Shown here in pieces: positions 1 to 53,340 of a stretch of 64,000 bases of DNA; position 1 is the stretch's first letter; each line of letters opens with the position of its first letter. Source of the stretch: Octopus vulgaris. Taxonomy: Eukaryota. The DNA lies in contig OX597842.1 of NCBI GenBank assembly GCA_951406725.2, forward strand, positions 31,806,001 to 31,870,000, written 5' to 3'. The notes below the pieces were generated by a model. That model worked only from the letters and a program-made list of their open reading frames with translations, did no database searches and was not told where the DNA came from. The position numbers were made by a program, and so were the translations under genes.

Positions 1-814
1 AAATGTAAAGAATTGTGGAAAGTGTTTCCAAAGCGTTCCACTTTGAAGAACAGAAATGAAAGAAAACCATCAGTGTTCTGGTGGTGCCATTAACACATTT
101 TTGGTTGGTCAGTAACCAAAATGGAATTGTTGAAGGATGTTGTGGGTAGGTAGTGGCAATGGTGGTGGTGGAGGTAGCTACACTGAATCCATATCAAGTT
201 TCAAAGAATTAAATCATGGAATGGAAGAGTTGAAGAAAACCAAGCTAACCTAAAAGTATGGTAGACAGGGCCATGAAGACACATCAAAGATTCCAACATT
301 CCAACTGAAGAATTCTAAGACACCAACAAATAAATTTACAAAATAATTCCATACAGTAAGAAGTCTTTGGCCACTTTAAACTATTGTAAATTTCTACTGA
401 TTGCCAACTTATAAGTGGATGTTTCACATTGCATTTTTCATAGATGAAACATTGACCCTGTTGGAGTAATTTCCATACCTAATCATTATATTTTGTAGTA
501 GGAATTCTGAATGAGAGGGGAAGACGTGAGATGACCATCAAAAATGGCCATCCAAAAGTTTTCAGCCACCTTACATAAACCAATCAAGATTCAGTGTTTT
601 AAAACAGAAAAAATGTCTATAATGAAAATTTATTACATAATGCACATTTCAAGAAGTTACTGTGCATTGTTAATATTCCATGTGGCTTCCCTTAGCTTTA
701 AAAATGTCTTCAATGCGCCTGGGAAGAGATGTGTACAAATCCATCTTTATAGGTATGAGATGCCATTCTTTGTGGTTGAGCTCCCATAGCTGGATTCATT
801 TGGCACTATTCAAG

Positions 815-1261
815 TTACCTCTCTCTCTCTTTACTCTTTTTACTTGTTTCAGTCATTTGACTGGGAAGAGATGTGTACAAATCCATCTTTATAGGTATGA
901 GATGCCATTCTTTGTGGTTGAGCTCCCATAGTTCTTCAAAATTGCATGGATTCTTCTGATGGACTCTCCTCTTTAGTTCTGTCCACATTTGCTTGATAAT
1001 ATTTAAGCCAGGACTCTGGGCTGGCCAGTCTTTCAATACAGTAACACTTTCATCAGCCAGATTCTGTTGTGTTGCATGCAAACTGAGGAATGGAGCTCCA
1101 TTAAGCTGAAAAATCTCTCCTTCATCCAAATTGTCCTTCAGCAACTGGATACATTTGGCACTATTCAAGTTACCATTAATTTTAACCAATTTTCTTGAAC
1201 CATCACTTTTTATGTATACCCAAAGCATCAGACTCTTTCCCACAAACTTCACTGTTTTCAT
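815..1261 (-). pseudogene. Tc1 DDE transposase C-terminal fragment
   Basis: Translation contains FQLNGAP and DWPAQSPGLNIIKQMWTELKRRV, matching Tc1 FQQDNAP and WPxQSPDLNPIE motifs with the catalytic acidic residues mutated. Confidence 0.9.
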
Positions 1262-1267
1262 TGTGTA

Positions 1268-1268
1268 A

Positions 1269-1302
<34 letters not shown>

Positions 1303-1530
1303 GTTTAACATCCGCTTTCCATGCTAGCATGGGTTGGACGGTTCAACTGGAGTCTGGGAAACTAGAAGGCTGCACCAGGCCCCAGTCTGATCTGGTAATG
1401 TTTCTATGGCTGGATGCCCTTCCTAACGCCAACCACTCTGTGAGTGTAGTGGGTGCTTTTTACGTGCCACCGGCACGGGGGCCAGGCGAGGCTGGCAACG
1501 GCCACGATCGAATGGTGCTCTTAACGTGCC
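1268..1530 (-). mobile_element. SINE with (CAT)n/(ATG)n tail inserted in the Tc1 element
   Basis: (cat)n followed by cgtttaacatccgctttccatgctagcatgggttggacgg. The same family recurs at ~27085, 28365, 34055, 35345 and 36310. Confidence 0.8.
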
Positions 1531-1839
1531 AACATATAAGTGAGAATTTGTCAGAAAGCCTCATCACATCTTCCCCTCTCATTCGGAACTTCTACTACAA
1601 AATACAATGATTAAGTATGGAATTAACTCCAACAGGGCCAATGTTTCATCTGTAAACAAACACGATGTGACAAATCCACTTATAAGTTGGCAATTACTAG
1701 AAATTTACAATTGTTTAAAGTGGCCAAAGACTTTTGCACAGTACTATATTTTTGTTTCTATTTCCTTCCTTTGTTGCAGAATATTTTTTTCGATGAATTC
1801 CAAAAATATCAACATAAAACAACAAATACGTCAACCAAC

Positions 1840-2067
1840 CTTTACTATTTCTGTGTCTTGAGGATAAACCACAAAGTTTACAACTTTGATCTGGCTTGAA
1901 TTTAGATCTGAGTAGTTTTTGACTGCTTCATACATAATTCCAGGTAGGTTTTCTATGGGGTACTTCAATTTTCCAGCTCCTATTATAGGAAATGCCAAGC
2001 ATTTTGCTCCCATTTTCTCCGCAGTGTGTAAGCATATGGTAATCATTTGAGTCAAGTTTGCCAGAAT
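1840..2067 (-). CDS. Macrodomain exon B, unit 1 (PARP9/14/15-like macrodomain, C-terminal half)
   Basis: 228 nt, acceptor tttttttag, donor gttggt, phase 0/0. ILANLTQMITICLHTAEKMGAKCLAFPIIGAGKLKYPIENLPGIMYEAVKNYSDLNSSQIKVVNFVVYPQDTEIVK contains the macrodomain hAFPxIGxG loop. Confidence 0.9.
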
Positions 2068-2497
2068 CTAAAAAAAATAATTGTTTAGTAATTGATAATG
2101 AACATTTTATTAAATTATTTCCTTATTACAGGAAGAAACCATTAAGTTGTAATAAATATATTCTCCTCTCACAACTCCTCTCACTCCTACCACTTCTAAA
2201 CATAACTGTCATTCCTATCACTCTTTAGTCCTGCAAGGGACAAGGCAACCTCACTCATGATGCTGCTACAATAAAACAGACCCCATCCACCGTGTAAAAT
2301 GGTTGGTGAATGAAGAGAGACAATGCAGACCCAAGAGGAGTCTTTAGTGTTGTTGAGGACATGACAACCTCTCTAGTGCTCGTGCCATGACAGAGAAAAA
2401 CTCACCAATACAGACAGTAAAACACAGAAATATGTTTTAATATAGTCTTATTTATCAGTCATATAACTGATACAGTTCTATATTTAAGAGATGAGGA

Positions 2498-2643
2498 ATT
2501 ATGTACATTATTTACATATGACAGATATTTGTCCTCATCTTGTTTGTTGCTAACACAACGTTTCAACTGATATACCCTCCAGCCTTCATCAGGTGTCTTA
2601 GGAAATTTCGAAGCTGGGTTCTCATTCCTAAGGTATTTTTCGA

Positions 2644-2687
<44 letters not shown>

Positions 2688-2970
2688 TCACTGTCTAGAA
2701 TTGAACTCAGAATCTAGGGATTAGTAGCCCACACTTTAACCACTATAGAGAGTGCGGGCTACTAACCCCAAGATTCCAAGTTTGATTCCAGGTAGTGACC
2801 TGAATAGTAATAATAATAATAACTTCGAAAAATACTTTAGGAATGAGAACCCAGGTTTGAAATTTCCCCAAGACACCTGATGAAGGCTGGAGGGTATATC
2901 AGCTGAAACGTTGTGTTAACAACAAATAAGATGAGGACAAATATCCGTCAAATGTAATAATATAAATAAT
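2498..2970. mobile_element. Foldback/MITE-like palindrome (~230-bp arms, very short loop)
   Basis: 2498-~2740 is the reverse complement of ~2750-2970 (gacagatatttgtcctcatc ... gatgaggacaaatatccgtc). Absent from the matching intron of unit 2. Confidence 0.85.
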
Positions 2971-3022
2971 GAACATGCATAAGGTTCTTCTCAATTATTA
3001 ACTGTTTCAATAAATCAATATC

Positions 3023-3237
3023 CTTTTTTACTTTAGGCACAAGGCCTGAAATTTTGTAGGAGGGGTCCAGTCGATTAGATCGACCCCAATACACAACTGG
3101 TACTTAATTTATTGACCCCAAAAGGATGAAAGGCAGAGTCGACATCCGTGGAATTTGAACTCAGAATGTAAAGACAGATGAAATATTGCTAAGCATTTCG
3201 CCCAGCATCCTAACATATCTGCCAGCTCACCGCCTTC
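3023..3237 (-). mobile_element. tRNA-derived SINE (family B) with 15-bp TSD
   Basis: caataaatcaatatc at 3008-3022 and 3238-3252. Empty site in unit 2 at ~15011-15025. Confidence 0.85.
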
Positions 3238-3269
3238 CAATAAATCAATATCATATGATTGATACTTAC

Positions 3270-3497
3270 TAAATCAGAGGAATATTCATCCCAGGGAGGT
3301 AATGCCAGATGAAATACATTCTTACAGTTGAGGTTATATCCTTTAGTGATGGCTATTTTAGATGTAGAAATACCTCGAGGATATTTCTGGTTACATTCAT
3401 CTTGTATCTCTGAACCAGCAGCAAAGAGAATAGATTTGGAGACAGCACCACTGTCAAGCTCAAGGTTTTTATTGGTGCTGTTAACGATGACATCAAC
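3270..3497 (-). CDS. Macrodomain exon A, unit 1
   Basis: 228 nt, acceptor ttttgtag, donor gtaagt, phase 0/0. VDVIVNSTNKNLELDSGAVSKSILFAAGSEIQDECNQKYPRGISTSKIAITKGYNLNCKNVFHLALPPWDEYSSDL has the macrodomain DVIVNxxN and GxVSxxIxxAAG motifs. Not in the ORF track. Confidence 0.92.
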
Positions 3498-3769
3498 CTA
3501 CAAAAGTAATTAATGGTAAACAACTAAGGAACATTCCATGGAGAGAAGAGAGATACATTGTTGCAGTTGATATTGTTGTTAAGAAAGGCTCTACAGAATG
3601 GCTGTAGTAAGTTTGAGGTTGTTAAAGTTAGCAAAAGATATACTCAAGATATCAGATGTGAAGGAAATAAGTTTGACTGAGAAAATGTTTTAATTAACTG
3701 TAATGATTCCTTATTTGGAAATGAAATAACATGAAAATATAAATAAGTTACATGAATCTATTTACTCAC

Positions 3770-3904
3770 AGATACATTAGAAATTGAATCAATCAATAGT
3801 TGTATGTTGATGCCAGCATTTTCTCCAGATGCCACATTATCTGGGTGCCACAGAAGAGGGTTCCTGTTGTGAACCAGGAAGGGATGCTTTCGATGATGCA
3901 GTGT
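3770..3904 (-). CDS. Probable linker/N-terminal macrodomain exon C, unit 1
   Basis: Acceptor tttttcag, donor gtgagt. Ends GENAGINIQLLIDSISNVS in phase 0, resembling the IxIxxGDI strand that precedes VDVIVN. The 5' frame is ambiguous. Confidence 0.65.
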
Positions 3905-4659
3905 CTGAAAAAAATAGACAAATATCAGTGTGTGTGTGTGTGTATCATTCACTTCTTTCAGTCATTCGAATGTGGCCATGCTGGGGCACCACCTTGAAGG
4001 CTTTTAGTTGAATGAATTAACCCCGTTATATCTTTTATCTTTTACTTCTTTCAGTCATTCGAATGTGGCCATGCTGGGGCACCACCTTGAAGAATTTTTA
4101 GTCAAATGAATCGACCCCAATACATTAATATTTTAAAGCCAGATACTTATTCTATCAGTCTCCTTTGATAAACCACTAAGTTATGGAAAGTGTGCTCTGG
4201 AACCCTATTACCACCATCTTTCTCCCCTCCAGATACTGTCATGCACCCTTGCATAAATATGAGGAGATCATGAGTCTCCCCTATATCCAGACAACTATGC
4301 TTGACCCTCTGGCAAACTTTAGAATTTCTACCCCTGGCATCAAGGCTCTTCCCCAACCCAATTCCATTGGGGGGTTTTATCCTTTTCCATTTTTTGCTTT
4401 GTTTTGCAAGATACTTGGTGACCTCACCAGTGCTGGTGCCATGAGAAAAGCACACTGTAAAATGGTTGGCAATATGAAGGGCAACCAGCCAGCCAGCCAT
4501 AGAAACCATGCCAAAGCTGAGCGTGGAGCCTAAAACAGATCTGGTGGTCATCAGATCCTGTCAAACTGTGTAACCCATGCCAGAGTAAATGATGGACATT
4601 AAATGAGGATGAGGATAATGATACAGTCCGTGAGTCTGTAAGTCAGAAAAACACGCACT

Positions 4660-5050
4660 CGTACATTTTTCAACAGAGTGGGTATATTACTTACTTGTAC
4701 TTGTGGCGACATTCACCCTGGGTGGGTTGTGTCGGCTTCTTCTACTCATGGAAGAAGTTTCGTGGGGATATGTGGATTTCACAAGCGGTCCCCAACAATC
4801 CCACATGTGGAGACATCCTGTTTGCCACAGATTGTACGCAGACACAGAGACAGAACGACTGGGGAGCTGCCAGTTACCAAAGCAGACACTCCGAGGATTT
4901 TCACCAGAGCCCCGTCTGCCGGGTTGTGGCCCTAATACCACTCAGTGTCAGACCAATCCGCCTTGGGTGGCACTACCAGGAACCGAAGTTCCCGACGGCA
5001 TAGCTCTGACACTACCCATTGCCAGTGTCCCCACCACGGAATGGGCATAT
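4660..5050 (+). repeat. Unclassified ~400-bp interspersed element, copy 1
   Basis: Similar in reverse complement to 10780-11195. Confidence 0.75.
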
Positions 5051-5574
5051 TAAGCGTAAACTATTCAGTATTATAAATCTATTTCAACCATTCTTACAAA
5101 TTTGTTTTGTACCTGATATTGGGTAATTAGGTGATTATCTAAGACTGTGCTCATCAGAGTGGTTGGTATGGAAAAGTTGCAGTAGCTTTCTGTCAGCAAG
5201 TTCCACATCTGGTTTGTGGAAGCTGTGAAAATAACTGAACAAATGAGAAGGAAGCAGTTAGAGAAGGGACCCTATAAAGAATATGTCCCTTGCCCCAAAT
5301 CCCTGAACAAGAAGTAATTACCTGCAAAGTGAGGTTTGGGAGGAGAGGATGGGACAAACACTCAAACAGTTAAACTCATGTCAATGCATTTATGAGTTGC
5401 ACTCAAAAAGTATCTGACTTTATTTTTCCTTCCCATGTGGGAAAAACCCTTTGGGTGAGCAGTGACTTCACCTTTCCTGTGCAACTGCAACTGCTCCTGG
5501 ACATTAAACCTAGAGTATAAACTTGTAGTGTGCACTGGACAGACCTTTGTGTTCATGCAAGATGACCAAATGTA

Positions 5575-5730
5575 TTGAGTAAAGATATTGCATCAAGTTT
5601 TACCAAAAGCTTGGTGACACTCAAGCTCAAAGCATCCAGAAAAGTTCAGCAGGCCTTCAGTAATGATGCCATGGCCAAAACTCAGATAAATAACTCGTAA
5701 AACCACTTCAGACAAAGCCACAACTCAGTG
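5575..5730 (+). mobile_element. Mariner transposase N-terminal fragment
   Basis: Reads like CIKFYQKLGDT...VQQAFSNDAMAKTQI, a mariner HTH region. Confidence 0.6.
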
Positions 5731-5971
5731 GAGTGTGAGGCATGCTCAGACCTTGCATAAATTGTTCACCTCACAACAAATTGTTTACCTTTTGAATGAA
5801 ATCCTTCATTTTCCTGTTTATTTATTACTCCTTCATTTTCGTCTTTATTTTGGAGATATTCATCAAATTTCTGTTAAAACAGAAAACAATCAGAATCACT
5901 TTTATGTTTTATTTTTTCATTCTTGCAAAAGGAAGAGATTTAATTCAACAAAACGAAACAAAATATTTGAA

Positions 5972-6570
5972 ATACAAGGTCTGATCAATAAGTATTTGAA
6001 CTGTTGCCTTAGTAAGGAAGCTAAAGTAAGCAGAGTGAAGCTGCTTGGCACAGATTGACCTTAGCTTACTTCCGTTGATTACAGTAGAGCTTGGAAATAA
6101 CATGTGTAACATGAAATTGAAATATCGACCATGACAGAAAAAGTTGTCATGGTGATACCTGCTCAATGGCACACACAAAATTGCAGAAAGTGTATGGAGA
6201 GGAGTGTATGAGCTGCACACAAGTGTACAAGTGGTTCAGACATTTCCAAAATTGCCGTAAAATGTCGAGAGTGACAAATGTTCGGGGAGACCCACAGACA
6301 ACATAAATGAGTAAAACGCTGCAGATGTGCATGCAGCTGTGAGGGGAAATCATTGAATCACCATCCTTGAGTTATCAGAGGATGTGCAGATTAGTTACAG
6401 TTCAGTTCAGTCGATTATCACTGAAGATTTGGGTGTGAGATGCATGTCTGCCAAGTTTGTGCCAAAACTGCTTTCAGTTGATGAAAAAGACATTTGGATT
6501 TCAGTTGCACAAAATCTCCTTGACTGTGTTGAGAACGGTGAAATCTTTTTGAAAACTTTGCATAGGTCTC
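5972..6570 (+). mobile_element. Mariner-like element, 5' TIR plus degenerate transposase
   Basis: Starts tacaaggtctgatcaataagt. Encodes ISYSSVQSIITEDLGVRCMSAKFVPKLLS, similar to the mariner WVPxxL motif. Confidence 0.85.
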
Positions 6571-6574
6571 TGAG

Positions 6575-6700
6575 CAGGTATCACGAAGCTTTTGACAAAA
6601 TTTGATGCAGATTCTCTTCTTCTTCATGGTCAATGCAACAACCACACACTACACACCTTCTTTCCAAGCACTGCTGTAAACAGTAGACGTGAGCTAGAAC
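6575..6700 (-). mobile_element. Mariner transposase N-terminal fragment, opposite strand
   Basis: Translation contains KRICIKFCQKLRDTCSETY. Confidence 0.6.
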
Positions 6701-7089
6701 GGGTATGTCAAACATGCAGCCCATTGCAAAACACCTGTGACCCACACAGACAGCCACCCTTTTCCCCTGAATGCATTGGCATCTTTGGATTTGGATCTGA
6801 TTACAAGCAAGAAGAAAGTTATACAATTATTCAGAGGCCCAGAGTTGCGAAATTTCCCATCAGCAAGCTAGCAATTGGCTAATCTGTGACTCCAGATGTT
6901 TTGTACATCAAATGTTACAGGTGTTTGAACATTGTGGAATGTACCTGTCAACGTTCATATGAGTTGATTTTCCTTTCTTCTCTTCATCATTCATTAAATT
7001 CTCATCTGGTAGACAGAGTTCATAGAGTGCTTTCAAGCCCTGCATTGCCTGTGTCCTGCGATTCTTGTCCCAGTGTGCTGCATTTCTGG

Positions 7090-9402
7090 TGAGTAGATTT
7101 ACAAATCTATTTTGTCTTTAAACTGAATGGAGGAGGGCGAGTGTTTCAAGAAAAATGGGAATTATAGTATTTTTGCACAACAGTGAGTGGAAAGATACAC
7201 TGAAAGAGTACAACTTGAAAAGACATTATGAAACATATCATCGATCTTATGATAAATATGGAGGTGGTTCAATGCATGTTTCAAGACTCAAGGAACTGAA
7301 GGCTAACTCAACACAGCAACAGACCTGTTTCACAGAAAAATCAGAAAGGGAATGTCGCTTCCGTTACAGAAAGCTATAAACTCCACCAAATGATCGCCAA
7401 GAATGGGAAATCTTACAGTGAAGGAGATTTCATAAAGCAATGCTTTGTAAAAAACGTCTGAAATTGTGTGTGCAGAGAAAGCATACTTATTCAAAGATAT
7501 CTCATTAACCAGGAACACTGTTGCTCAATGGATTGATGAAATGTCAGGTGATCTGAAGCAACAGTTGAAAGCTGCATCATCAAGATTTGAACATTTTGTA
7601 TTGCTATTGATGAGACCATTGACATCACTGGAAAAGCACAGCTCGCAGTCTTCATCGGGGCCTGTGACAGTGAATTTAATATTTATGAAGAACTGATTGA
7701 ACTGATCTCCATGCATGATACTACAACAAGCCAAAACATCTTTGAGAAAGTCGAACGGGTTCTGTATGATTATGGTTTTGATTTGAGTAAACTTGCACAC
7801 TTATCTATTCATGGTGCAGTGAATATAGTTGGCAGACATAATGTGTTTCTGCTAAGTTACAAACAAAAATAAAAAATTTGCATCTGGATCCATTAGTTGC
7901 ACATTTTCATTGCATTATTCATCAGCAAAATTTGTGCTCAAAGATTTTAAAATTGGATCTTGCGCTTAGTTTGGTCACAATGACAGTGAACTATATCAGA
8001 GGCCACGCTTTCAACCACTGTCAATTCAGTCAGTTGTTGAAAGATATGGATAATCAGTTCACTGATGTTCCATTCTTCACAGAAGTCTGCTGGTTTTCAT
8101 GCCACAAAGTGCAGAAAATATTTCATTCGTTGAAATAAGAAATAATTATGTTTTTGGAGATGAAAGGTCAAAAACAGATGAAACAAAAGATGAGAGGTGA
8201 TTCCAGGATCTGGCTTTTGCTGTGGACATTACTGCACAATTAACTAATCTCGATTTGTAATTACAAGGTAAAAACAAACCCATCACTCAGTTGTATGGTG
8301 ACATCAAGTGCTTCATTAGAAAATGAAGCTTATGGAAGTCACAGTTGTCAAATGAAAATTTAATCCATTTTCCTAAGTGCAAAGAGCTGAAAAACTGCAC
8401 TAATACTGAGTCTGTACTTAGCTTTGCTAAGTATGACAGTCACCTGGAATTTCAGGAAAGATCTCTCATCTTTTGAACATCTGTTTGCATTATTCTCAGC
8501 ACCATTCACCTTTGATGTTGCTAAGGCAAAAGAAAGTCTGCAGAGGAAGCTATTCAAAATGCAGTCAGATTCTTCACTCAGATCAAAGTATTTTGAAGTG
8601 GGGATAACTGGTTTCTTTTCATACCTTCCTGAAAACTTTAAAGACTTCAGAAAGTTTACCACAAGGATTATGGCAATGTTTCATTCTACCTGTGTGTGTA
8701 AACAGTTATTTTCCTTCATGAAATCAACAAAAACTTCTCAGAAAACAAGACTGACAATCAACACTTGTTATCTGTTTCTTTATTACCCACAAGGGGCTAA
8801 ACATAGAGAGGACAAACAAGGACAGACAAACGGATTAAGTCGATTACATCGACCCCAGTGCGTAACTGGTACTTAATTTATCGACCCCGAAAGGATGAAA
8901 GGCAAAGTCGACCTCGGCGGAATTTGAACTCAGAGCGTAACGGCAGACAAAATACGGCTACGCATTTCGCCCGGCGTGCTAACGGTTCTGCCAGCTCGCT
9001 GCCTTTTATCACTTGTTATCTCTGATCAAACTCAGAACTGCACAGACATTTCAGCCAGACAAACCAAAAATTTTCAGCAAAAAGGTGTCAAGCCTCACGA
9101 CAAAATACTGAAAATGTTTGAAAAGTTGTAACTAAATGTTCATTTTGAACTATTGTAAATTTTGTACGATATATTTGTTGCTGTTGCATTCACATCTATG
9201 TTGCCTATTTAAGCTTCATTTTTTTTCTTTTGGTTAAAGTACTTCATTACTTACCCAAAGTATGTTTCTAAGTTTAAGTAAGAAAAATATTCTGCAATAA
9301 TTTTTATGAAATGACTTCAATTGGAATTGAAGCGAGTGCAGCCCTTGTGACAACACAAATGTGGCCCATATGGCTCTTGGGAGCCCCTCACTCTGACATG
9401 CC
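7090..9402 (+). mobile_element. Degenerate hAT (Charlie/SPIN, GTF2IRD2-like) transposon
   Basis: Frameshifted pieces LKEYNLKRHYET, ISLTRNTVAQWIDEMSGDL, HCIIHQQNLCSK and a hAT dimerisation-like tail (MAMFHSTCVCKQLFSFMK). Probable 3' end tgacatgcctg near 9402. Confidence 0.88.
8774..9009 (-). mobile_element. SINE family B monomer with 12-bp TSD
   Basis: cacttgttatct at 8762-8773 and 9010-9021. tRNA-like head with a B-box (gagttcaaattcc). Confidence 0.9.
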
Positions 9403-9444
9403 TGAGCTAGAATGTTAAAACTTAGTGAGCATGCACAACAGAGT

Positions 9445-9540
9445 TCGAGGTCAATCTGTACCAAGTGGCATAACTCTGCATGCTTTAGCTTCATTACTCT
9501 GGCAACAGTCCAGATATTTATTGATCAGACTGTGAACTTA
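9445..9540 (-). mobile_element. Mariner 5' end fragment
   Basis: Reverse complement of ~5972-6062 with scattered mismatches. Confidence 0.75.
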
Positions 9541-10359
9541 ACGATTTATTTCTCATCAATAACAAACAAACGAGGAAAATTATTTTGTTATTCAGATCAA
9601 AGCTATTCCATGTATAACCGTCCATGTCTTCCAGAAGATATGAAACCTGTCTCAATATGGTAATACAGTGGATGCGGCAGAAAAACCTCTCACAATTTAC
9701 ATGGCCACTGATGTAGTGTTAGTGAAGTTAAACATGTGGCAATGGTGTCTTCATGTAGCTGAAGTTGTATTGTTTCTTCTCTCCACTCACCATTCTGATT
9801 AAAACTGCTGAGTCTTGTGTTTGCTGTTGAAATGTCTATCAAGAATGTTGAAGTTGAGGTTCTTTGGTGCATCTTGTGTAGCCAAGAATATTTGAGCAAC
9901 AAAAGCAGAGTACAAGGTAATTATTTTCATATTGTAAGCAAGAAGGAGGAGGTGGAAGAGGTCCAACAATTAGGATCATGGTCATTCTTAAGAGAGATGA
10001 CAAAGGAAAAGAGAAAAGATTCAAAAAGAAAGAACTTCACAAACAGTTCTACAGTGGACAGGAATTTCCCCAATTTCTTCATTACAGCATATGGACATAA
10101 AGAATGCCTTTTGGTATTAACACTGCTTCTGTTGCTATTAATTATCTTTAATAAGCCTTCAGGCTATTTGTGACATCACTGTCTATATATCGTTGACAGG
10201 GAGATTTGGCTGTTATGCTGCTACAGGGTGTCTGTCACTGATGAACTTGAGCAGGGCGAAAATACGTGATCTGGCAGTTCTGGTGCCTTTAGCAGATGAT
10301 TGTTGTCCACCAACAATATGCACCACATCTGCCTAAAAATTGACTTCAGTTTAAATTCA

Positions 10360-10668
10360 GTTTCACCACTCTGACTCTGAGTCCTCTACTGTTGGCACCT
10401 CTGACTCTGACTCTTCTGTATGTAATTAAGTAATTGTGGTCAACCTATCTCATAAAGCATATGCATACACTTGTACTTTGAGTAGGCCTATATGTTATAA
10501 CTGGTTTATATTAAAGAATGAAGGCATTGTGAGTCAGAGTCGGTATAGTTTTACCGACTCCAACTCCAGCTACCCCTTAATTGTTTCGACTCCATCTCCA
10601 ACTCCACAACTCTGACACTCTGACTCCAACTCCATGACTCAAACTTCAGCTCTGACTCCACAGTTCTG
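10360..10668. mobile_element. Degenerate non-autonomous DNA element with (GACTCC/GACTCT)n subterminal repeats
   Basis: Repeated gactcc/gactct hexamers ending ctccacagttctg. The class assignment is from recall. Confidence 0.45.
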
Positions 10669-10689
10669 GTTTATTCAACAAGCACACAG

Positions 10690-11195
10690 TGTAAATACCA
10701 TATGCAACATCTTATAGGATTGAGTACTACATACATAAATACAAGAACAGGGAGATAAACATACAAACAATGTCTACTGGCAGTCCCCAAAGTCCATACC
10801 CTTCTCACCGTGGTGGGGACGCTGACAACGGGTAGTGTCAGAGCTATGCCGTTGGGAACTTCGGTTCTTGGTAGGGCCACCCAAGGTGGATTGGTCTGAC
10901 ACAGAGTGGTATTAGGGCCACAACCCGGCAGACGGGGCTCTGGTGAAAATCCTTGGAGTGTCTGTTTCAGCAACCGGTGGCTCCTCGGTCATTCTGCCCC
11001 TGCATCTGCGTACTATCTGCGGCAAACAGGATGTCTCTACATGCGGAATTGTTGGGGACCACTTGTCAAATCCACATATCCCCACGAAACTTCTTCCATG
11101 AATCCTCAATGGCGAATACAATGCCTCGAGGGTGGTGGAAGAAGCCAACTCAACCCGTCCAGGGTGAATGTCACCGCAAGTACAAGTAAGTACTG
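10690..11195 (-). repeat. Unclassified interspersed element, copy 2 (longer, with AATAAA-containing 3' tail)
   Basis: Inverted homologue of 4660-5050. Confidence 0.75.
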
Positions 11196-11399
11196 GCAGA
11201 GAATGAGCAAATGAAAACATCACAGGATTTAAGGTCAATAACAAAAATAAGCAACAGAAAGACTTCAAAAACTCAGATAATATAAAAGACAGTGGCAATA
11301 ATATTAAAATGAATCATCAAAAAAGATCCAACAAAATGGATTACCGATTTCACAATGTTCCAGATACTAACAATCAAATGGAACATCATGAAAACAGAA

Positions 11400-11830
11400 T
11401 CAAAAAGTCATGAGATAAATATAAAAATTAATAGTACAAATAACTGTACAAGCTGTAGAAAATCCACTTGTCTGCTCATGAACCAATGTGTCCAAAAAAA
11501 CATAGTATACAAATAAACAATCTCCACCTCCCAACATAAATATGTGTACATAGGTGCCATGGAAAACCAATTCAAAGTCAGTTATCACAGCCACACGTTG
11601 TCATTCCGAAAAATAAACAGACAACACGCAACTTCACTGGCAGACCTCATATGGGGAATGAAAGAATCATAAATTAAATACAAAATGGAATGGTCAATAA
11701 TAAAAAATGCACACCTGTGTGGTTCGTTACTTGAGGAAGCATTGAGTATACTGATGAATAATGAGAACCTGGTAAACAAGCATGATGAGAAAATTCCAGA
11801 GTATAATCACTGTGCCAAATATGCATTTTC
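11400..11830 (+). mobile_element. Penelope-like retroelement GIY-YIG endonuclease remnant
   Basis: Hand translation CTSCRKSTCLLMNQCVQKNIVYK*TIST...VYIGAMENQFKVSYHSH...TSLADLIWGMKES*IKYKMEWSII shows the VY..YIG motif and two in-frame stops. Confidence 0.85.
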
Positions 11831-12000
11831 AAGATGGGACAGTGTATAAAAATATCTATAATTTAGTTTCCCCACTCCACCCATTCTTCCCATTCCACAT
11901 ATGTATGTGTGTGTGTATATGTTGGGGTGCTCAAGGATATGCCTATGCGAATGCATATGTGTAGGTAAATGAATGTATAGGTGTGAATGGGATTCTTGAT

Positions 12001-12019
12001 CAGAGAGAGAGAGAGAGAG

Positions 12020-12104
<85 letters not shown>
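12001..12104. repeat. (GA)n(GT)n microsatellite
   Basis: Direct reading. Confidence 0.95.
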
Positions 12105-12106
<2 letters not shown>

Positions 12107-12810
12107 ACATTCACAATCCAGCATTGCCATGGCAGGATTTGAAATCAGAATGCCAAGTACTGAAACGAACACCACAGAAGGTCTTCTGTCATTCTTCTAC
12201 TTCTATGAATCCAACAGAGAAGACGGACATTTTTATGAATTGTGAAGGAATAAAAGGTTAGTATGGCACCGGCAGGATTTGAACTGAGAATACTAAGGGC
12301 TGAAACAAAGATTAGAAGGTTTCCTATCTGCCAGTTTTGACGACAGCAGACTGTGATTTAAGAGACACTTGGCTGCTATTACTAGCAAGTCAAGGCACAG
12401 CATAGAAGCCCCTTAATTGATTCATCCAACTTTGAGAAGAAATGTAAAGAATTGTGGGAAAGAGTTTCCAAAGCGTTCCACTTTGAAGAACAGAAATGAA
12501 AGAAAACCATCAGTGTTCTGGTGGTGCCATTAACACATTTTTGGTTGGTCAGTAACCAAAATGGAATTGTTGAAGGATGTTGTGGGTAGGTAGTGGTAGT
12601 GGTGGTGGTGGAGGTAGCTACACTGAATCCATATCAAGTTACTAAGAATTAAATCATGGAATGGAAGAGTTGAAGAAAACCAAGCTAACCTAAAAGTATG
12701 GTAGACAGGGCCATGAGACACATCAAAGATTCCAACATTCCAACTGAAGAATTCTAAGACACCAATATATAAATTTACAGAAGGATTCCATATTTTTGTT
12801 TCTATTTCCT

Positions 12811-13690
12811 GGATAAAACACAGCAGAGGATCATGGACTGGCAACTCAAGCTGGCTGTGGACAAATGTACCACCATGCATTTTGGGAGGAAAAACTCAGC
12901 GTCTACTTACTCCCTCCACAACACTAATCTCAAAAAGTCTTCTTGTGAACGTGACCTGGGCATTATTGTCGACAGTGATTTGTGTTGGACAAAACACATT
13001 GCTAAAATTGCCAAGAAGGCTGAGGGTGTCTTGGCATCACTCACCAAGTCCTTTGTGAGCCACTCTCCGGCTATCTATCTGCAGCTTTATATAGCTATGG
13101 TGTGGCCTCAACTGGAATTTGCATCACTGGTCTGGAACCCCTATCTTTCTCAGGATATTAATCGTCTGGAAACCGTTCAGCGACGTGCAACTAAGAGAAT
13201 ACCCTCCATCAGGCATTTGCCATATTCTGAATGCCTTACTTCCCTGGGCATGGATACATTGAAACTCCGACGTCTGGCAGCTGACTTGGTAGACACTCAT
13301 AAAATTATTAACCATCTTACAAACAATAACTCTGAGCACCTTTTCAAACTCCACCTGTCTAACACCCGTGGACATGTTTACAAAGTCAGAAAACAGCACA
13401 GCTCCTTCCATGACTTTCGGAAACATTTTTTCACGCTGAGAGCTGCTGAAGCATGGAACAAACTGCCGGCATCAGTTGTTAGTTGTTGGAGCACTGCATC
13501 CTTCAAAACTTCCATGCTTCCTCAGATTTGCCAACACTACACCTGATCTTTCTCCCCTCCATACACACGCGAGCATGTATCTGACTCATACACTGTTCAC
13601 TTCCCAGACATTTGTACATTACTGCAGATGCTTTATACGCACTTTTGACAAGTTGTGGTGCACCTGAGCACTGTATACAATAATTTCCAT
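12811..13690 (+). mobile_element. CR1-clade LINE, 5'-truncated 3' end (RT C-terminus)
   Basis: The 237-aa ORF has KCTTMHFG, ERDLGIIVD, LETVQRRATK and NTRGH motifs. Followed by a 3' UTR ending in ttattattcat. Confidence 0.92.
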
Positions 13691-13699
13691 TATTATTCA

Positions 13700-14118
13700 T
13701 TTACTCTTTTACTCTTTACTCATTTACTTGTTTCAGTCATTTGACTGCGAAGCCATGCTGGAGCACCGCCTTTAGTCGAGTAACTCGGTCCCGGGTCTTA
13801 TTCTTTTTTTGTAAGCCCAGTACTTATTCTATCGGTCTCTTTTTGCCGAACCGCTAAGTGACGGGGACGTAAACACACCAGCATCAGTTGTCAAGCAATG
13901 CTAGAGGGACAAACACAGACACACAAACACACACACGCATATATATATATACATATATACGACAGGCTTCTCAGTTTCCGTCTACCAAATCCACTCACAA
14001 GGCATTGGTTGGCCCGGGGCTATAGCAGAAGACACTTGCCCAAGATGCCACGCAGTGGGATTGATCCCGGAACCATGTGGTTGGTTAGCAAGCTACTTAC
14101 CACACAGCCACTCCTGCG
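13700..14118 (-). mobile_element. SINE family A, full length (tRNA head, internal TA/TG microsatellite, TTACTCTT-type tail)
   Basis: Minus strand starts ggcgcaggagtggctgtgtggtaagtagc. The family recurs throughout the window. Confidence 0.9.
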
Positions 14119-14201
14119 CCTATTTAATGTAGAATTTTTTTTTTTTTGTAAATTCCAAAAATATCAACTTAAAACAACAAATGGAAAATAAACAAACCAA
14201 C

Positions 14202-14429
14202 CTTTACTATCTCTGTGTGTTTTGGAAAAACAAAGTAAACATCTTTGATGCAGCTTGAATTTTGATTTGAATAGTTTTTCACGAAGCTTCTATACATAGT
14301 TCTGGGCAGGTTTTCAATGGGATAATTCAATGTTCCAGCTCCTAATATAGGAAATGCAAGGCTTTTTGTTCCCATTCTCTCAGCAGCTTCCAGACAAGTG
14401 GTTATTATTTGAGTCAAGTTTGCCAGAAT
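14202..14429 (-). CDS. Macrodomain exon B, unit 2
   Basis: 228 nt, same splice sites and phase as 1840-2067. ILANLTQIITTCLEAAERMGTKSLAFPILGAGTLNYPIENLPRTMYRSFVKNYSNQNSSCIKDVYFVFPKHTEIVK. Confidence 0.88.
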
Positions 14430-15042
14430 CTAAAAAAAATAATTATTTAGTAATTGATAATGAACATTTTATTAAATTATTTCCTTATTACAGGAAGAAA
14501 CCATTAAGTTGTAATAAATATATCCTCCTCTCACAACTCCTCTCACTCCTACCACTTCTAAACACAACTGTCATTCCTATCACTCTTTAGTCCTGCAAGG
14601 GAACAAGGCAACCTCACTCATGAAGCTGCTACAATAAAACAGACCCAATCCACCGTGTAAAATGGTTGGTGAATGAAGAGAGACAATGCAGACCCAAGAG
14701 GAGTCTTTAGTGTTGTTGAGGACATGACAACCTCTCTAGTGCTCATGCCATGACAGAGAAAAACTCACTAATACAGACAGTAAAACAGAGAGAAATATGT
14801 TTTAATATAGTCTTATTTATCAGTCACATAACTGTTGTTAGGCCATGAGGCTTTTTTCCTTCTATTTATATATAAAAGTGTCCTGTTCATCGATATCTTC
14901 TGCTTCCTTCCAATGATAACTTGGAAGAACAAATATTAAACAGGATGCTGACATTTGCTTTATGATTCTCACACAACATGCATAAGGTTCTCTTCAAACA
15001 TTAACTGTTTCAATAAATCAATATCATATGATTGATACTTAC

Positions 15043-15270
15043 TGAATCAGAGGAATTTTCATCCCAGGGAGGTAATGCCAGATGAAATACATTCTTACAT
15101 TTGAGGTTATATCCTTTAGTGACGGCAATTTCAGATGCAGAAATACCTTGAGGATATTTCTGGTTACATTCATCTTGTATCTCTGAACCAGCAGCAAAGA
15201 GAATATATTTGGAGAAAAAACCCTTTTGAAGCTGGAGTTCTTTATTGGTGCTGTTAATGATGACATCAAC
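15043..15270 (-). CDS. Macrodomain exon A, unit 2
   Basis: 228 nt, acceptor ttttcaag, donor gtaagt. VDVIINSTNKELQLQKGFFSKYILFAAGSEIQDECNQKYPQGISASEIAVTKGYNLKCKNVFHLALPPWDENSSDS. Confidence 0.9.
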
Positions 15271-15520
15271 CTTGAAAAGTAATTAATGGTAAACAACTAA
15301 GGAACAGTCCATGGAGAGAAGAGAGATACATTGTTGCAGTTGATATTGTTGTTAAGAAAGGCTCTACAGAATGGCTGTAGTAAGTTTGAGGTTGTTAAAA
15401 TTAGCAAACGATATACTCAAGATATCAGATGTGAAGGAAATAAAATGTTTGAGTTTGACTGAGAAAATGTTTTAATTAACTTTAACGATTCCTCATTTGA
15501 AAATGAAATAACAATTAAAT

Positions 15521-15620
15521 NNNNNNNNNNNNNNNNNNNNNNNNNNNNNNNNNNNNNNNNNNNNNNNNNNNNNNNNNNNNNNNNNNNNNNNNNNNNNNNN
15601 NNNNNNNNNNNNNNNNNNNN
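15521..15620. other. Assembly gap (100 N)
   Basis: Run of n. Confidence 1.
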
Positions 15621-21858: not shown

Positions 21859-22186
21859 TTGGTCATAATTGGTCATATATGGACCAAATGTTCTACACAT
21901 TTTGTGTTCACACTGACCAGATCCAGCCTTTCACACCTACCCTACAATGTCATTCTGAAAAATATTGAAATCCCAAAGCTATGAGATAATCTGTGGTTAA
22001 TTGGAAACAATGCAAATAAAGAAGGATTAGATTTGAGAGAGAAATCCGAATGCTAGTGGGAAGGTGTTACAGTTCAGAGATGAAACACCTGGTTATAATT
22101 GGATACGGCCTGATGACATCGGTTCCACTTGGACAAAGTTCCATTCACTTTGTTCCTTCTCGAGCCATCATCATCATCAATGTTCG

Positions 22187-25100
22187 ACCGTGGTCGAGAC
22201 AATGGAATTTACCATGCTACACCAGACTTCACGGTCCATCATGGCATTACGGAGGTCCTGTTGCTTGATGCCTGTATCCCTGGAGATTAGATCAGGGTAG
22301 GAGAGTGTGCGCCCTCTGGTATCGCGACCGTGGTCGAGACAATGGAATTTACCATGCTACGCCAGACTTCACGGTCCATCATGGCATTACGAGGTTGTGC
22401 TGGATGCTGTCCGAATTCATCAGGGTTGGAGAGTGTGCGCCCTCTGGTATCGCGACCGTGGTCGAGACAATGGAATTTACCCTGCTACGCCAGACTTCAC
22501 GGTCCATCATGGCATTACGGAGGTCCTGTTGCTGGATGCTTGTATCCCTGGAGATTACATCAGGGTTGGAGAGTGTGCGCCCTCTGGTATCGCGACCGTG
22601 GTCGAGACAATGGAATTTACCCTGCTACGCCAGACTTCACGGTCCATCATAGCATTACGGAGGTCCTGTTGCTGGATGCCTGTATCCCTGGAGATTACAT
22701 CAGGGTAGGAGAGTGTGCACCCTCTGGTATCGCGACCGTGGTCGAGACAATGGAATTTACCATGCTACACCAGACTTCATGGTCCATCATGGCATTACGG
22801 AGGTCCTGTTGCTGGATGCCTGTATCCCTGGAGATTAGATCAGGGTAGGAGAGTGTGCACCCTCTGGTATCGCGACCGTGGTCGAGACAATGGAATTTAC
22901 CATGCTACGCCAGACTTCACGGTCCATCATGGCATTACGGAGGTCCTGTTGCTGGATGCCTGTATCCCTGGAGATTAGATCAGGGTAGGAGAGTGTGCAC
23001 CCTCTGGTATCGCGACCGTGGTCGAGACAATGGAATTTACCATGCTACGCCAGACTTCACGGTCCATCATAGCATTACGGAGGTCCTGTTGCTGGATGCC
23101 TGTATCCCTGGAGATTACATCAGGGTAGGAGAGTGTGCACCCTCTGGTATCGCGACCGTGGTCGAGACAATGGAATTTACCATGCTTACGCCAGACTTCA
23201 CGATCCCTCATATCATTATGGAGGTCCTGTTGCTGGATGCCTGTATCCCTGGATATTTCATCAGGGTAGGAGAGTGTGCGCCCTCTGGTATCGCGACCGT
23301 GGTCGAGACAATGGAATTTACCATGCTACGCCAGACTTCACGGTCCATCATGGCATTACGGAGGTCCTGTTGCTGGATGCCTGTATCCCTGGAGATTAGA
23401 TCAGGGTAGGAGAGTGTGCGCCCTCTGGTATCGCGACCGTGGTCGAGACAATGGAATTTACCATGCTACGCCAGACTTCATGGTCCATCATGGCATTACG
23501 GAGGTCCTGTTGCTGGATGTTTGTATCCCTGGAGATTACATCAGGGTAGGAGAGTGTGCGCCCTCTGGTATCGCGACCGTGGTCGAGACAATGGAATTTA
23601 CCATGCTACACCAGACTTCACGGTCCATCATGGCATTATGGAGGTCCTGTTGCTGGATGCCTATATCCCTGGATATTACATCAGGGTAGGAGAGTGTGCA
23701 CCCTCTGGTACCGCGACCGTGGTCGAGACAATGGAATTTACCATGCTACACCAGACTTCACGGTCCATCATGGCATTACGGAGGTCCTGTTGCTGGATGC
23801 CTGTATCCCTGGAGATTAGATCAGGGTAGGAGAGTGTGCGCCCTCTGGTATCGCGACCGTGGTCGAGACAATGGAATTTACCATGCTACGCCAGACTTCA
23901 CGGTCCATCATGGCATTACGGAGGTCCTGTTGCTGGATGCCTGTATCCCTGGAGATTAGATCAGGGTAGGAGAGTGTGCGCCCTCTGGTATCGCGACCGT
24001 GGTCGAGACAATGGAATTTACCATGCTACGCCAGACTTCACGGTCCATCATAGCATTACGGAGGTCCTGTTGCTGGATGCCTGTATCCCTGGAGATTACA
24101 TCAGGGTAGGAGAGTGTGCGCCCTCTGGTATCGCGACCGTGGTCGAGACAATGGAATTTACCATGCTACGCCAGACTTCACGGTCCATCATAGCATTACG
24201 GAGGTCCTGTTGCTGGATGCCTGTATCCCTGGAGATTACATCAGGGTAGGAGAGTGTGCGCCCTCTGGTATCGCGACCGTGGTCGAGACAATGGAATTTA
24301 CCATGCTACGCCAGACTTCACGGTCCATCATGGCATTACGGAGGTCCTGTTGCTGGATGCCTGTATCCCTGGAGATTAGATCAGGGTAGGAGAGTGTGCG
24401 CCCTCTGGTATCGCGACCGTGGTCGAGACAATGGAATTTACCATGCTACGCCAGACTTCACGGTCCATCATAGCATTACGGAGGTCCTGTTGCTGGATGC
24501 CTGTATCCCTGGAGATTACATCAGGGTAGGAGAGTGTGCGCCCTCTGGTATCGCGACCGTGGTCGAGACAATGGAATTTACCATGCTACGCCAGACTTCA
24601 CGGTCCATCATGGCATTACGGAGGTCCTGTTGCTGGATGCCTTTGTATCCCTGGAGATTACATCAGGGTAGGAGAGTGTGCGCCCTCTGGTATCGCGACC
24701 GTGGTCGAGACAATGGAATTTACCATGCTACGCCAGACTTCACGGTCCATCATGGCATTACGGAGGTCCTGTTGCTGGATGCCTGTATCCCTGGAGATTA
24801 GATCAGGGTAGGAGAGTGTGCGCCCTCTGGTATCGCGACCGTGGTCGAGACAATGGAATTTACCATGCTACGCCAGACTTCACGGTCCATCATGGCATTA
24901 CGGAGGTCCTGTTGCTGGATGCCTGTATCCCTGGAGATTACATCAGGGTAGGAGAGTGTGCGCCCTCTGGTATCGCGACCGTGGTCGAGACAATGGAATT
25001 TACCATGCTACACCAGACTTCACGGTCCATCATGGCATTATGGAGGTCCTGTTGCTGGATGCCTATATCCCTGGATATTACATCAGGGTAGGAGAGTGTG

Positions 25101-25250
25101 CGCCCTCTGGTATCGCGACCGTGGTCGAGACAATGGAATTTACCATGCTACACCAGACTTCATGGTCCATCATAGCATTACGGAGGTCCTGTTGCTGGAT
25201 GCCTGTATCCCTGGAGATTACATCAGGGTAGAAGAGTGTGCGCCCTCTGG
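22187..25250 (-). repeat. Tandem array of 22 copies of a 140-bp unit equal to the 3' end of an RTE LINE
   Basis: gaccgtggtcgagacaatgg recurs from 22187 to 25117 at mostly 140-bp spacing (one 127-bp unit, and 141/142-bp variants). Confidence 0.95.
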
Positions 25251-25605
25251 TATTGCAAGTAGATGGCTTCCAGAGGAGAAGAGTAGAAATTACCTTGTTT
25301 TCAGCTCTACAACATTGTCCAGCAAACTGGACTCTCCTACCTTTCACAAGAGATGACACAGGTGGTAGTTTCCCATATATTTGCATTTTGGTTGGATGGC
25401 GCTTCCACGAGAGATTTTGAGCTCTCATAAGGAGGCGAGTGTAGGTTCCATCCAACTGCCTCTCAAGCTTCTTTGATAACGTCCAGGTTTCTGAGCCATA
25501 GAGTAGAATTGGTTCAACTGTGGCTTTGAAAATTTCAAGTTTGAAGTCTCTACTTAGATTTGATGACCAGATCTTATGCATCGCATTACAGGCTGACCAG
25601 GCCAT
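25078..25605 (-). mobile_element. RTE-clade LINE, 5'-truncated (RT C-terminal region)
   Basis: Translation has IFKATVEPILLYGSETWTL, RRVQFAGQCCRA and RGRTLFYPDVISRD. The (GAT)n tail lies beyond the array at ~22168-22182. Confidence 0.9.
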
Positions 25606-37951: not shown

Positions 37952-38485
37952 CATCGATTACATCGACCCCAGTGAGTAACTGGTATTTAATTTATCGACC
38001 CCGAAAGGATGAAAGGCAAAGTCGACCTCGGCGGAATTTGAACTCAGAACGTAACGGCAGACGAAATACCTATTTCTTTACTACCCACAAGGGGCTAAAC
38101 ACAGAGGGGACAAACAAGGGCAGACAGAGGGATTAAATCGATTATACCGACCCCAGTGAGTAACTGGTACTTAATTTAATCGACCTCGAAAGGATGAAAG
38201 GCAAAGTCAACCTCGTGGAATTTGAACTCAGAATGTAGTGGCAGACGAAATACCTATTTCTTTACTACCCACAAGGGGCTAAACATAGAGGGGACAAACA
38301 AGGACAGACATAGGTATTAAGTCGATTACATCGACCCCAGTGCGTAACTGGTACTTAATTTATCGACCCCGAAAGGATGAAAGACAAAGTCGACCTCGGT
38401 GGAATTTGAACTCAGAACGTAACGACAGACGAAATACCGCTAAGTATTTCACCCAGTGTGCTAACGTTTCTACCAGCTGGCCACC
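37952..38485 (-). mobile_element. SINE family B trimer
   Basis: Junction gcagacgaaatacc|tatttctttac at ~38069 and ~38251. Confidence 0.85.
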
Positions 38486-43159: not shown

Positions 43160-43800
43160 GACATTTGGCTATTTTTTCTACCATATCTAACAACCGTGTT
43201 CAGACTCAATGCGTTACAGAGTACAATGTAATTTGAGGGTGATTTGGCTGTTGTTTCTAGCATGGCAGAGTCACCACCGTTTTTAAGACAGCACAGTGTA
43301 ATTTGAATGAGATTTGGCTGTTATTTCTAGCATAGTAGGGTCAACGCCTTTTTAATGACAACTGAGTATAATTTGAGGGAGATTTGGCTGTCGTTTCTAG
43401 CATGGCAGGGTCACCACCGTTTTTAAGACAGCACAGTTTAATTTCAGAGAGATTTAGCTGTTATTTCTGGCATAGTAGGGTCACCACCTTACTTTGTAAT
43501 GACAACAGTGTAAATTGAGTGAGATTTGGCTGTTATTTCTCGCATGATACGATCAGTACCTTCCTTTTTTAAGACAGTAGAGTGTAATTTGAGGGAAATA
43601 TGGCTGTTATTTCTAGCATAGTAGAGTCACCGCTTTTTATTAAACAGTATATTGTAATATGGGGGGGATTTGGCTGTTATTTCTAGCATTGTGCAATCAC
43701 TACCTTCCTCTTTTAAGATGATACAATTTAATTTTTGAGGGATTTGGCTGTTGTTTCTGGCATGATAGAGTCACCACCTTCTTTTTGAAAGACACGGTAG
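43160..43800. repeat. Old diverged ~62-70-bp tandem repeats with core gagatttggctgttatttctagca
   Basis: About 10 diverged, mutually homologous units. Confidence 0.85.
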
Positions 43801-53298: not shown

Positions 53299-53340
53299 CA
53301 CATAAAGGCAGTGATTTACAGCAGAAGCAGCAGCAGCTGC

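Follow-up and report, generated by a model that had tools for sequence, protein, structure and literature searches.

Neighbouring PARP14-like macrodomain cassettes of Octopus vulgaris differ mostly by family-wide exon variants, probably shuffled between copies and kept diverse by selection

Two neighbouring exons on chromosome 29 (chr29) of Octopus vulgaris, each encoding the first half of a PARP14-like macrodomain, differ by many more amino acid replacements than silent changes. The reading we favour, at a probability of roughly 0.65, is that the exons belong to neighbouring copies of a PARP14-like cassette, and that their differences are mostly variants present throughout the family which have been shuffled between copies and kept diverse by selection. 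The exons lie in a window of 64,000 nucleotides (contig OX597842.1 of assembly GCA_951406725.2, positions 31,806,001 to 31,870,000; coordinates given without a chromosome are those of the window), at 3270-3497 (exon A1) and 15043-15270 (exon A2). Both are on the minus strand, each with an AG acceptor and a GTAAGT donor, and their translations start with VDVIVNSTNKNLELDSGAVSKS (A1) and VDVIINSTNKELQLQKGFFSKY (A2). By codon comparison, 21 of 228 nucleotides differ between the two, which gives 15 replacement codons (5, 11, 13, 15, 16, 18, 19, 22, 41, 45, 47, 50, 57, 72 and 76) and two codons with synonymous differences only (12, CTT/CTC; 48, ATA/ATT). Twelve of the 21 differences fall within the 36 nucleotides of codons 11-22 (binomial P = 1.7e-5), and this clustering is real. 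A first-pass annotation of this DNA had counted the same 15 and two codons and had placed eight of the 15 replacements in codons 5-22; both counts are exactly reproduced. It had also taken the pattern as a sign of diversifying selection, and on this point the pair by itself says little: the Nei-Gojobori method (synonymous differences Sd = 2, nonsynonymous differences Nd = 19) gives a ratio of nonsynonymous to synonymous divergence (dN/dS) of 2.9 (range to 3.7), but with only two silent differences the test of dN/dS > 1 has P = 0.12 (kappa 1) or 0.05 (kappa 3). Where the claim of diversifying selection stands is across the paralogues taken as a whole.

Each exon A is part of a cassette of four exons - L (a linker of 82 nucleotides), Z (linker plus first strand), A and B (228 nucleotides each) - which we defined from a listing of open reading frames (ORFs) and from tblastn with octopus macro-PARP proteins. 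The O. vulgaris genome contains at least 51 exon A and 51 exon B matches, with no stop among the matches listed, and most cassettes are on chr1 (C1 at 5.3-9.4, 206-207 and 215-216 Mb). Splice sites are kept across the family (AG...GTAAGTAT), and one paralogous exon exactly matches the O. vulgaris protein CAI9714769.1. Among 161 distinct derived alleles, no stop-creating change was seen where 5.8 would be expected without constraint (P = 0.003). The loci that we read do include one exon B that ends in stops (L005) and one exon A with a divergent 5' end (L048).

The exons of this family are three to four times as diverse as its introns. In 22 aligned cassettes, diversity is 4.3% in the intron upstream of exon A, 8.6% in exon A, 2.8% in the 610-bp A-B intron and 11.7% in exon B; over 49 copies, exon A reaches 10.4% against 4.0% for the upstream intron. 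Diversity at codon positions 1, 2 and 3 is 0.131, 0.095 and 0.086 respectively, mean pairwise nonsynonymous diversity (piN) is 11.6% and its synonymous counterpart (piS) 7.1%, for a tree-free piN/piS of 1.64, and four-fold degenerate sites (0.038-0.060) are near intron values.

Codon models fitted to the paralogues, an analysis that the first-pass annotation had itself proposed, also point to selection, with a family dN/dS (omega) above 1 and a class of sites at omega 3-5. For 48 distinct exon A sequences, the one-ratio model M0 (IQ-TREE, GY+F3X4) gives omega = 1.35, and omega = 1 is rejected (P = 0.02); this test and the comparisons of M1a with M2a were made with our own pruning code, which reproduces the IQ-TREE likelihood. 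For the same sequences M2a is preferred to M1a (2dlnL = 129.8, P = 7e-29), with 28% of sites at omega 4.9, and the codons with omega > 1 are 10, 11, 13, 15, 16, 22, 29, 30, 33, 45, 47, 57, 59, 65, 68 and 76. For exons A and B together (27 sequences), M2a is again preferred (2dlnL = 83.3, P = 8e-19), with 30% of sites at omega 3.1, and codons 19, 25, 90, 91, 109, 132, 136, 143 and 145 are added to those selected. The omega 3-5 class takes in the loop codons 10/11, 13, 15/16, 19 and 22. At the other extreme, about 30% of codons have omega near 0.01-0.2, and in exon A such conserved codons are interleaved with hypervariable ones.

How, then, did the two exons of the window come to differ? For 19 of the 21 bases that distinguish A1 from A2, both alleles are found within a set of 44 other paralogues. 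The two exceptions are the third base of codon 15 and the first base of F19, which no member of the set has and which are common to exon A2 and its twin on chr1 (the window as far as 15520 has a near-identical counterpart there, described below); the F18 base of exon A2 has one occurrence elsewhere among the paralogues, and position 18 is S in the chr1 twin. The exon tree does not pair the copies: copy 1 groups with L002/L003 and copy 2 with L009/L017/L030. Sisterhood of the two copies, as a deduction from their low intron divergence, was considered and rejected, since the intron is common to all cassettes: the ~4% divergence of the pair is no sign of close kinship because the same intron is ~4% diverse across all 49 copies. 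The differences can therefore not be read, as they were in the first-pass annotation, as substitutions accumulated since a duplication of A1 and A2. The bulky F-F pair in the loop, which it suggested may block or change binding, is present in exon A2; it is partly very recent, the chr1 twin having S-F, and it belongs to a copy of a gene that is broken as assembled.

Comparison of the chr29 and chr1 twins points the same way. Over 14.3 kb they differ by 98 substitutions (0.69%), while exon A1 differs by 7 (3.1%), A2 by 5 (2.2%), B2 by 6 (2.6%) plus a 3-bp indel, and B1 by none; most of these are replacements. In a third cassette, ~24 kb before the window start, divergence from the twin reaches 8.8% for exon A and 7.5% for exon B, whereas the intron shows 1.5% and the upstream sequence ~1%. 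At 30 of the 32 exon A sites that differ between the twins, both alleles are already present in other paralogues, which points to templated replacement and away from new mutation. Blocks of exon B occur in all combinations (GAGxL or GA(E/K)-M, VVNF or DVYF, YP-QDTEIVK or LPEEDREIAK), and among informative site pairs 28% are incompatible by the four-gamete test. As the introns are nearly uniform, a conversion tract spanning a whole cassette would alter its exons by ~9% and its introns by ~2-3%, matching what is observed.

Several observations weigh against the combination of exchange and selection that we favour. First, as to selection, M0 omega for exons A and B together is 0.94 (27 sequences), and tree-free counts of nonsynonymous to synonymous variable sites (91:26, P = 0.15) and of common variants (31:5, P = 0.05) are marginal. 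Single-tree site models are moreover prone to false positives when sequences exchange, and the P values of the M1a/M2a comparisons are inflated because one tree is assumed while more than a quarter of site pairs are incompatible as described above. Second, as to exchange, no near-identical conversion donor was found among 50 paralogues (the best has 3 mismatches in 108 nucleotides), and a permutation test akin to the pairwise homoplasy index (PHI) finds no decay of incompatibility with distance inside exon A (P = 0.5), so that recurrent mutation to the same states is a possible source of the sharing. Third, as to the locus, chr29 has a single annotated model, an odd ab initio prediction of 421 aa ('Hypothetical predicted protein') that starts inside A2 past the loop and joins A2 to A1; no protein or transcript-derived match above 85% identity was found for cassette 2; and if the chr29 block is a mis-scaffolded haplotig, as it could be, the 'recent duplicates' are alleles.

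Given that the likelihood tests are inflated and the tree-free counts marginal, we regard as robust the excess of exon over intron diversity and the excess of piN over both piS and four-fold diversity. Diversifying selection is well supported for the family, the loop included, but this support does not extend to the pair or to ligand specificity; selection would be the force that maintains the diversity. Likewise, as the PHI-like test is negative, the evidence for exchange consists of allele sharing and the twin comparisons, and to judge from the sequences the shuffling process would be gene conversion.

A mutational process focused on exons (for instance transcription-linked, or related to A-to-I editing) would raise exon divergence without selection. 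Synonymous diversity in exon A (7.1%) is also above that of the intron, and dimorphisms of the coding strand are biased, with A/G against C/T at 32:15 in exons A and B and 14:24 in the flanking introns (L003-L030; chi-square calculated by hand ~8.3, P ~0.004), which base composition does not explain. Four-fold sites in conserved codons are nonetheless at an intron-like 3.8%, the interleaving of conserved and hypervariable codons is hard to obtain from such a process, and the alleles at differing sites already occur elsewhere, and so are templated rather than new. We consider this account very improbable. The A/G excess in exons may result from selection for polar or charge swaps, or may be tied to cephalopod A-to-I editing.

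The protein context of the variable segment is that of a macrodomain. Both exons have a Pfam Macro (PF01661) match that begins at profile position 1, exon A1 with E 1.7e-11 and exon A2 with E 3.6e-9; exon A alone scores 44.5 and 37.0 bits (cut-off 22) over profile positions 1-68/70, and full cassettes in relatives score 70-312 bits. For both exons the nearest solved structure is human PARP14 macrodomain 2 (MD2), with matches in the PDB to MD2 or MD1-2. The cluster of differences is at the NSTN motif, loop 1 and helix 1, which confirms the first-pass assignment to a macrodomain and the position of the cluster after an NxxN-type motif. An AlphaFold2 model from a 12-row alignment is of low confidence (predicted local distance difference test, pLDDT, 45) and was used for the order of secondary-structure elements only, an order that agrees with the macrodomain assignment. 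According to the macrodomain literature, loops 1 and 2 surround the diphosphate and distal ribose of ADP-ribose in characterised macrodomains. An ADP-ribose pocket is expected to show an Asp ahead of the NxxN-type motif, a loop 1 with glycine and a G-x-G loop 2. Both window copies have D2, N6/N9 (NSTN), G17 and FP(I/L)(I/L)GAGxLxYP, which the family conserves, but the agreement is partial: loop 1 has a single glycine in the window copies (DSGAV and QKGFF, against the canonical GGG), and loop 2 is shortened to GA(E/K)-M in 12 of 27 cassettes. In these 27 (from L001-L030), loop 2 has two length forms: GAGxL(K/R/N)YP in 15, and in 12 GA(E/K)-M(K/N)YP, which is without the second glycine and one residue. 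The two forms suggest that there may be two pocket configurations within the family.

A recent tandem duplicate pair that has since diverged by point substitutions, under diversifying selection on ADP-ribose specificity, would seem a natural explanation of such a pattern. The flanking introns are ~4% diverged against 12 of 36 bases in codons 11-22, the dN/dS of the pair is 2.9, the variable segment aligns with macrodomain loop 1, and loop codons belong to the omega > 1 class. We nevertheless find it improbable. Introns are ~3-4% diverged between almost all members, the exon tree splits the two copies, their differences are overwhelmingly family-wide variants, and the test on the pair is not significant. 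Nor is the signal peculiar to the loop: piN/piS is 1.74 within it and 1.61 outside, and selected sites are also found elsewhere in exon A and in exon B, loop 1 with helix 1 being the densest hot spot and not the sole one. A change of ligand is not indicated, because the core residues for ADP-ribose are conserved. The likeness to mammalian macro-PARPs, to which the first-pass annotation had appealed, cuts the opposite way, since in primate PARP14 the macrodomain surfaces under selection were found to lie apart from the ADP-ribose site (Daugherty et al. 2014).

The state of the window copies needs to be considered separately from that of the family. On the minus strand, cassette 2 (A2, B2) comes first, followed by an exon L and then cassette 1 (Z1, A1, B1), the two cassettes being 11.8 kb apart. 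The features are as follows.

1-15520, no strand: the window's part of the chr1 twin block, itself part of an inverted block of at least 37 kb that is 98-99.3% identical to C1 9368195-9405000
1840-2067, minus strand: exon B of cassette 1, 76 codons, second macrodomain half with loop 2 FPIIGAGKLKYP; identical to the chr1 twin
3270-3497, minus strand: exon A of cassette 1, coding for the first half of an MD2-like macrodomain (76 codons, phase 0/0); AG acceptor at 3498-3499, GTAAGT donor below 3270
3432-3467, minus strand: codons 11-22 of exon A1, NLELDSGAVSKS; these cover loop 1 and the beginning of helix 1
3498-3731, minus strand: conserved part of the intron preceding exon A1; divergence from 15271-15513 ~4%, diversity within the family ~4%
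3770-3904, minus strand: exon Z of cassette 1, linker and first beta-strand ...INIQLLIDSISNVS
5789-5870, minus strand: linker exon L, KFDEYLQNKDENEGVINKQENEGFHSK; 82 nucleotides, between cassettes 2 and 1
14202-14429, minus strand: exon B of cassette 2, with a change of MYEA-V to MYRSFV at ~14284-14291
14430-15042, minus strand: A-B intron of cassette 2, 613 bp, conserved across the family (diversity 2.8%)
15043-15270, minus strand: exon A of cassette 2, identified by splice sites, translation and Pfam Macro
15205-15240, minus strand: codons 11-22 of exon A2, ELQLQKGFFSKY; loop 1 region of cassette 2
15521-15620, no strand: assembly gap of 100 N, which takes out exon Z of cassette 2 and ends the block shared with chr1

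Exons A1, B1, A2 and B2 are each intact, and the window copies are not a processed pseudogene, as introns are present. Exon Z1, however, lacks 2 bp between 3840 and 3839 that every other paralogue has, and this deletion creates an in-frame TAA at 3837-3839, so that cassette 1 as assembled has a disrupted frame: a spliced A2-B2-L-Z1-A1-B1 runs into the TAA, whereas the chr1 twin reads through 370 aa. Exon Z of that twin has an 18-bp in-frame deletion between GTGGCA direct repeats, overlapping the 2-bp deletion of chr29. At 14284-14291 exon B2 has a private complex change (a 3-bp insertion and four substitutions); the resulting MYRSFV is absent from its chr1 twin and from 25 of 25 other cassettes examined. 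By tblastn, no PARP catalytic or WWE exon was found from -40 kb to +30 kb of the window start; the annotated chr29 protein is without a catalytic domain, and by this measure the locus is not a macro-PARP gene. The window copies are probably not an intact gene as assembled, and this comes under the pseudogene outcome that the first-pass annotation had named as counting against its own reading.

It could accordingly be argued that the window copies come from a dead duplicate gene under relaxed constraint, their replacement-rich differences being neutral decay. The premature stop in Z1, the lack of a nearby catalytic or WWE exon, the private oddities of copy 2 (F18, and RSF in exon B), the aberrant annotated model and a pair dN/dS not significantly different from 1 all fit. 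Decay of the window copies fails, though, to explain why exons are several times as diverse as introns, why codon positions 1 and 2 vary more than position 3, why there is no stop in the 51 matches listed for each of exons A and B, why nearly all the differences are already found in other cassettes, or why some 30% of codons are under strong constraint. The frameshift may in addition post-date nearly all of the differences, the twins being 99% identical, or be an assembly error. For these differences, decay is an unlikely explanation.

Assembly error bears on the whole block. From -21.7 kb relative to the window start to 15520, the sequence is an inverted twin of C1:9368195-9405000, and the chr29 block may in fact be chr1 9.37-9.41 Mb sequence, present as a haplotig or a misplaced contig, in which case the locus is single-copy and the differences between twins are allelic. 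The high identity over at least 37 kb, ending exactly at a 100-N scaffold gap, and the lack of a chr1 counterpart for the sequence to the right of that gap are what such an artefact would leave. DNA searches used to follow the block further matched transposable elements only. Three points speak for genuine duplicates: the third cassette is 8-9% different in both exons, with homology between it and its twin lost after exon B; the Z1 deletions differ (2-bp against 18-bp); and a third related segment at chr1:207.05 Mb (L019) shows that real segmental duplication occurs in the family. We rate an artefact as possible but doubtful, and it leaves the comparison of copies 1 and 2 unchanged. The third cassette has three related genomic copies, L019 (C1:207055577), L021 (C1:9407584) and L010 (C29:31781485); in exon A, L019 and L021 differ by 5 bases and L010 differs from either by 19-20. 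The existence of three such copies indicates that the locus has undergone segmental duplication more than once.

Our preferred account of exchange with selection can be set out as follows. The two exons are the first macrodomain exon of two adjacent L-Z-A-B cassettes within a fragment, on chr29, of a PARP14/15-like multi-macrodomain gene, whose intact relatives have several tandem cassettes between a canonical macrodomain and a PARP catalytic domain. D2, N6, G17, the FH motif and the loop-2 glycines make up a conserved core, on which the family carries a pool of variants that are mostly nonsynonymous and for the most part two-state. These variants would move among cassettes by ectopic gene conversion or unequal exchange, which would also hold the introns nearly uniform, while selection for diversity would stop homogenisation of the exon variants and so leave exons with three to four times the diversity of introns. 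The densest hot spot is made up of loop 1 and one face of helices 1-2, beside the ADP-ribose site. The 15:2 pattern would then be a draw from the pool of variants with a few private changes added, and no record of substitutions after duplication.

Relatives illustrate the gene organisation assumed here. The O. sinensis protein XP_029633869.1 (1142 aa) has a truncated canonical macrodomain, four cassettes (the second without exon B) and then a PARP catalytic domain, with five Macro-matching stretches in all, and in O. sinensis P0164 two cassettes come after a first macrodomain of the canonical NAAN...GG type. The relatives P0003, P0005, P0008, P0009 and P0165 carry a PARP catalytic domain (PF00644).

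Other features of the region are repeats. Downstream of cassette 1, in an intron region, a 151-aa ORF at 818-1270 (minus strand) resembles, by eye, the C-terminal part of a Tc1/mariner-type transposase. Just past the assembly gap, 16.9-21 kb is occupied by 3 kb of microsatellite and low-complexity sequence. Satellite arrays follow at 22185-25253 (a 140-bp unit x22, 96% matches), 43799-45129 (69-bp x19) and 47453-53299 (62-bp x95), and a 184-bp unit forms two arrays, at 37953-38438 and 61211-61946. Before the start of the window, L036:1-2500 (C29:31766001-31768500) is a transposable element of which the genome has at least 40 copies, 94-98% identical. Its divergence is about that of the cassette introns, a hint that the cassette expansion and the burst of this element are perhaps of similar age.

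The closest known parallel is that of vertebrate macro-PARPs (PARP14, PARP9 and PARP15), with which the octopus family shares the Macro fold by Pfam, best PDB matches to PARP14 MD2/MD1-2 and, in octopus relatives, a PARP catalytic domain behind tandem macrodomains. For mammals it is established that macro-PARPs undergo positive selection and turnover. In both groups fast evolution is concentrated in macrodomains and is accompanied by gene turnover, a pattern read as host-virus conflict, and by analogy the octopus family may have an innate-immune role of this kind. Four differences are evident. First, the octopus has multiplied a single MD2-like cassette, inside genes as well as over clusters, into at least 51 copies. 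Second, its exons outdo its introns in diversity, with variants common to and shuffled among paralogues. Third, the octopus hot spot abuts the ADP-ribose loop, in contrast to the selected surfaces of primates, which lie away from the binding site. Fourth, the window locus is without a nearby catalytic domain. Among invertebrates, lancelet and sponges are reported to have clusters of PARP14-like genes (Perina et al. 2014, cited in PMC13224862), which are likewise lineage-specific tandem duplications; as described in that citing source, they consist of a handful of whole-gene paralogues, as opposed to the intragenic cassettes of octopus. A search of the literature found no report on a cephalopod expansion, on intragenic cassette arrays or on exon-over-intron diversity, and one proteomic study that lists a PARP14-like protein in O. 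vulgaris skin mucus.

A second parallel comes from unrelated families. In the peptide-binding exons of class I/II genes of the major histocompatibility complex (MHC), in snake-venom phospholipase A2 (PLA2) genes and in conotoxin genes, introns are more uniform than exons and replacement diversity exceeds silent diversity. Variants in MHC and venom families occur across loci, and mosaics are ascribed to gene conversion together with balancing or diversifying selection. The octopus family resembles them in its uniform introns, diverse exons and variants in common. It differs from them in that its fold and presumed function are those of an intracellular ADP-ribose reader and in that its variation is between germline paralogues of one genome.

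We can envisage, as a speculation we hold improbable, that the octopus macrodomain cassettes form a germline repertoire, in which arrays without a catalytic domain (such as those of chr29 and chr1) serve as a reservoir for gene conversion into expressed macro-PARP genes. If true, the repertoire would parallel, inside the cells of an invertebrate, the diversification of immune receptors from donor cassettes, with surface variants arranged around the ADP-ribose pocket, and its driving force would be a conflict with viral macrodomains or other antagonists.

In vertebrates, macro-PARPs count among the antiviral genes that evolve fastest. The present case shows that a count of nonsynonymous and synonymous differences between two copies is no record of substitutions since their duplication when the copies belong to a large gene family whose members exchange. 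A cephalopod family of at least 50 cassettes amounts to a natural mutational scan of the macrodomain surface, in which the core is conserved and about a quarter of codons are hypervariable, shuffled between copies and concentrated beside the ADP-ribose loop. It would add ADP-ribose readers to the lineage-specific innate-immune expansions of molluscs.

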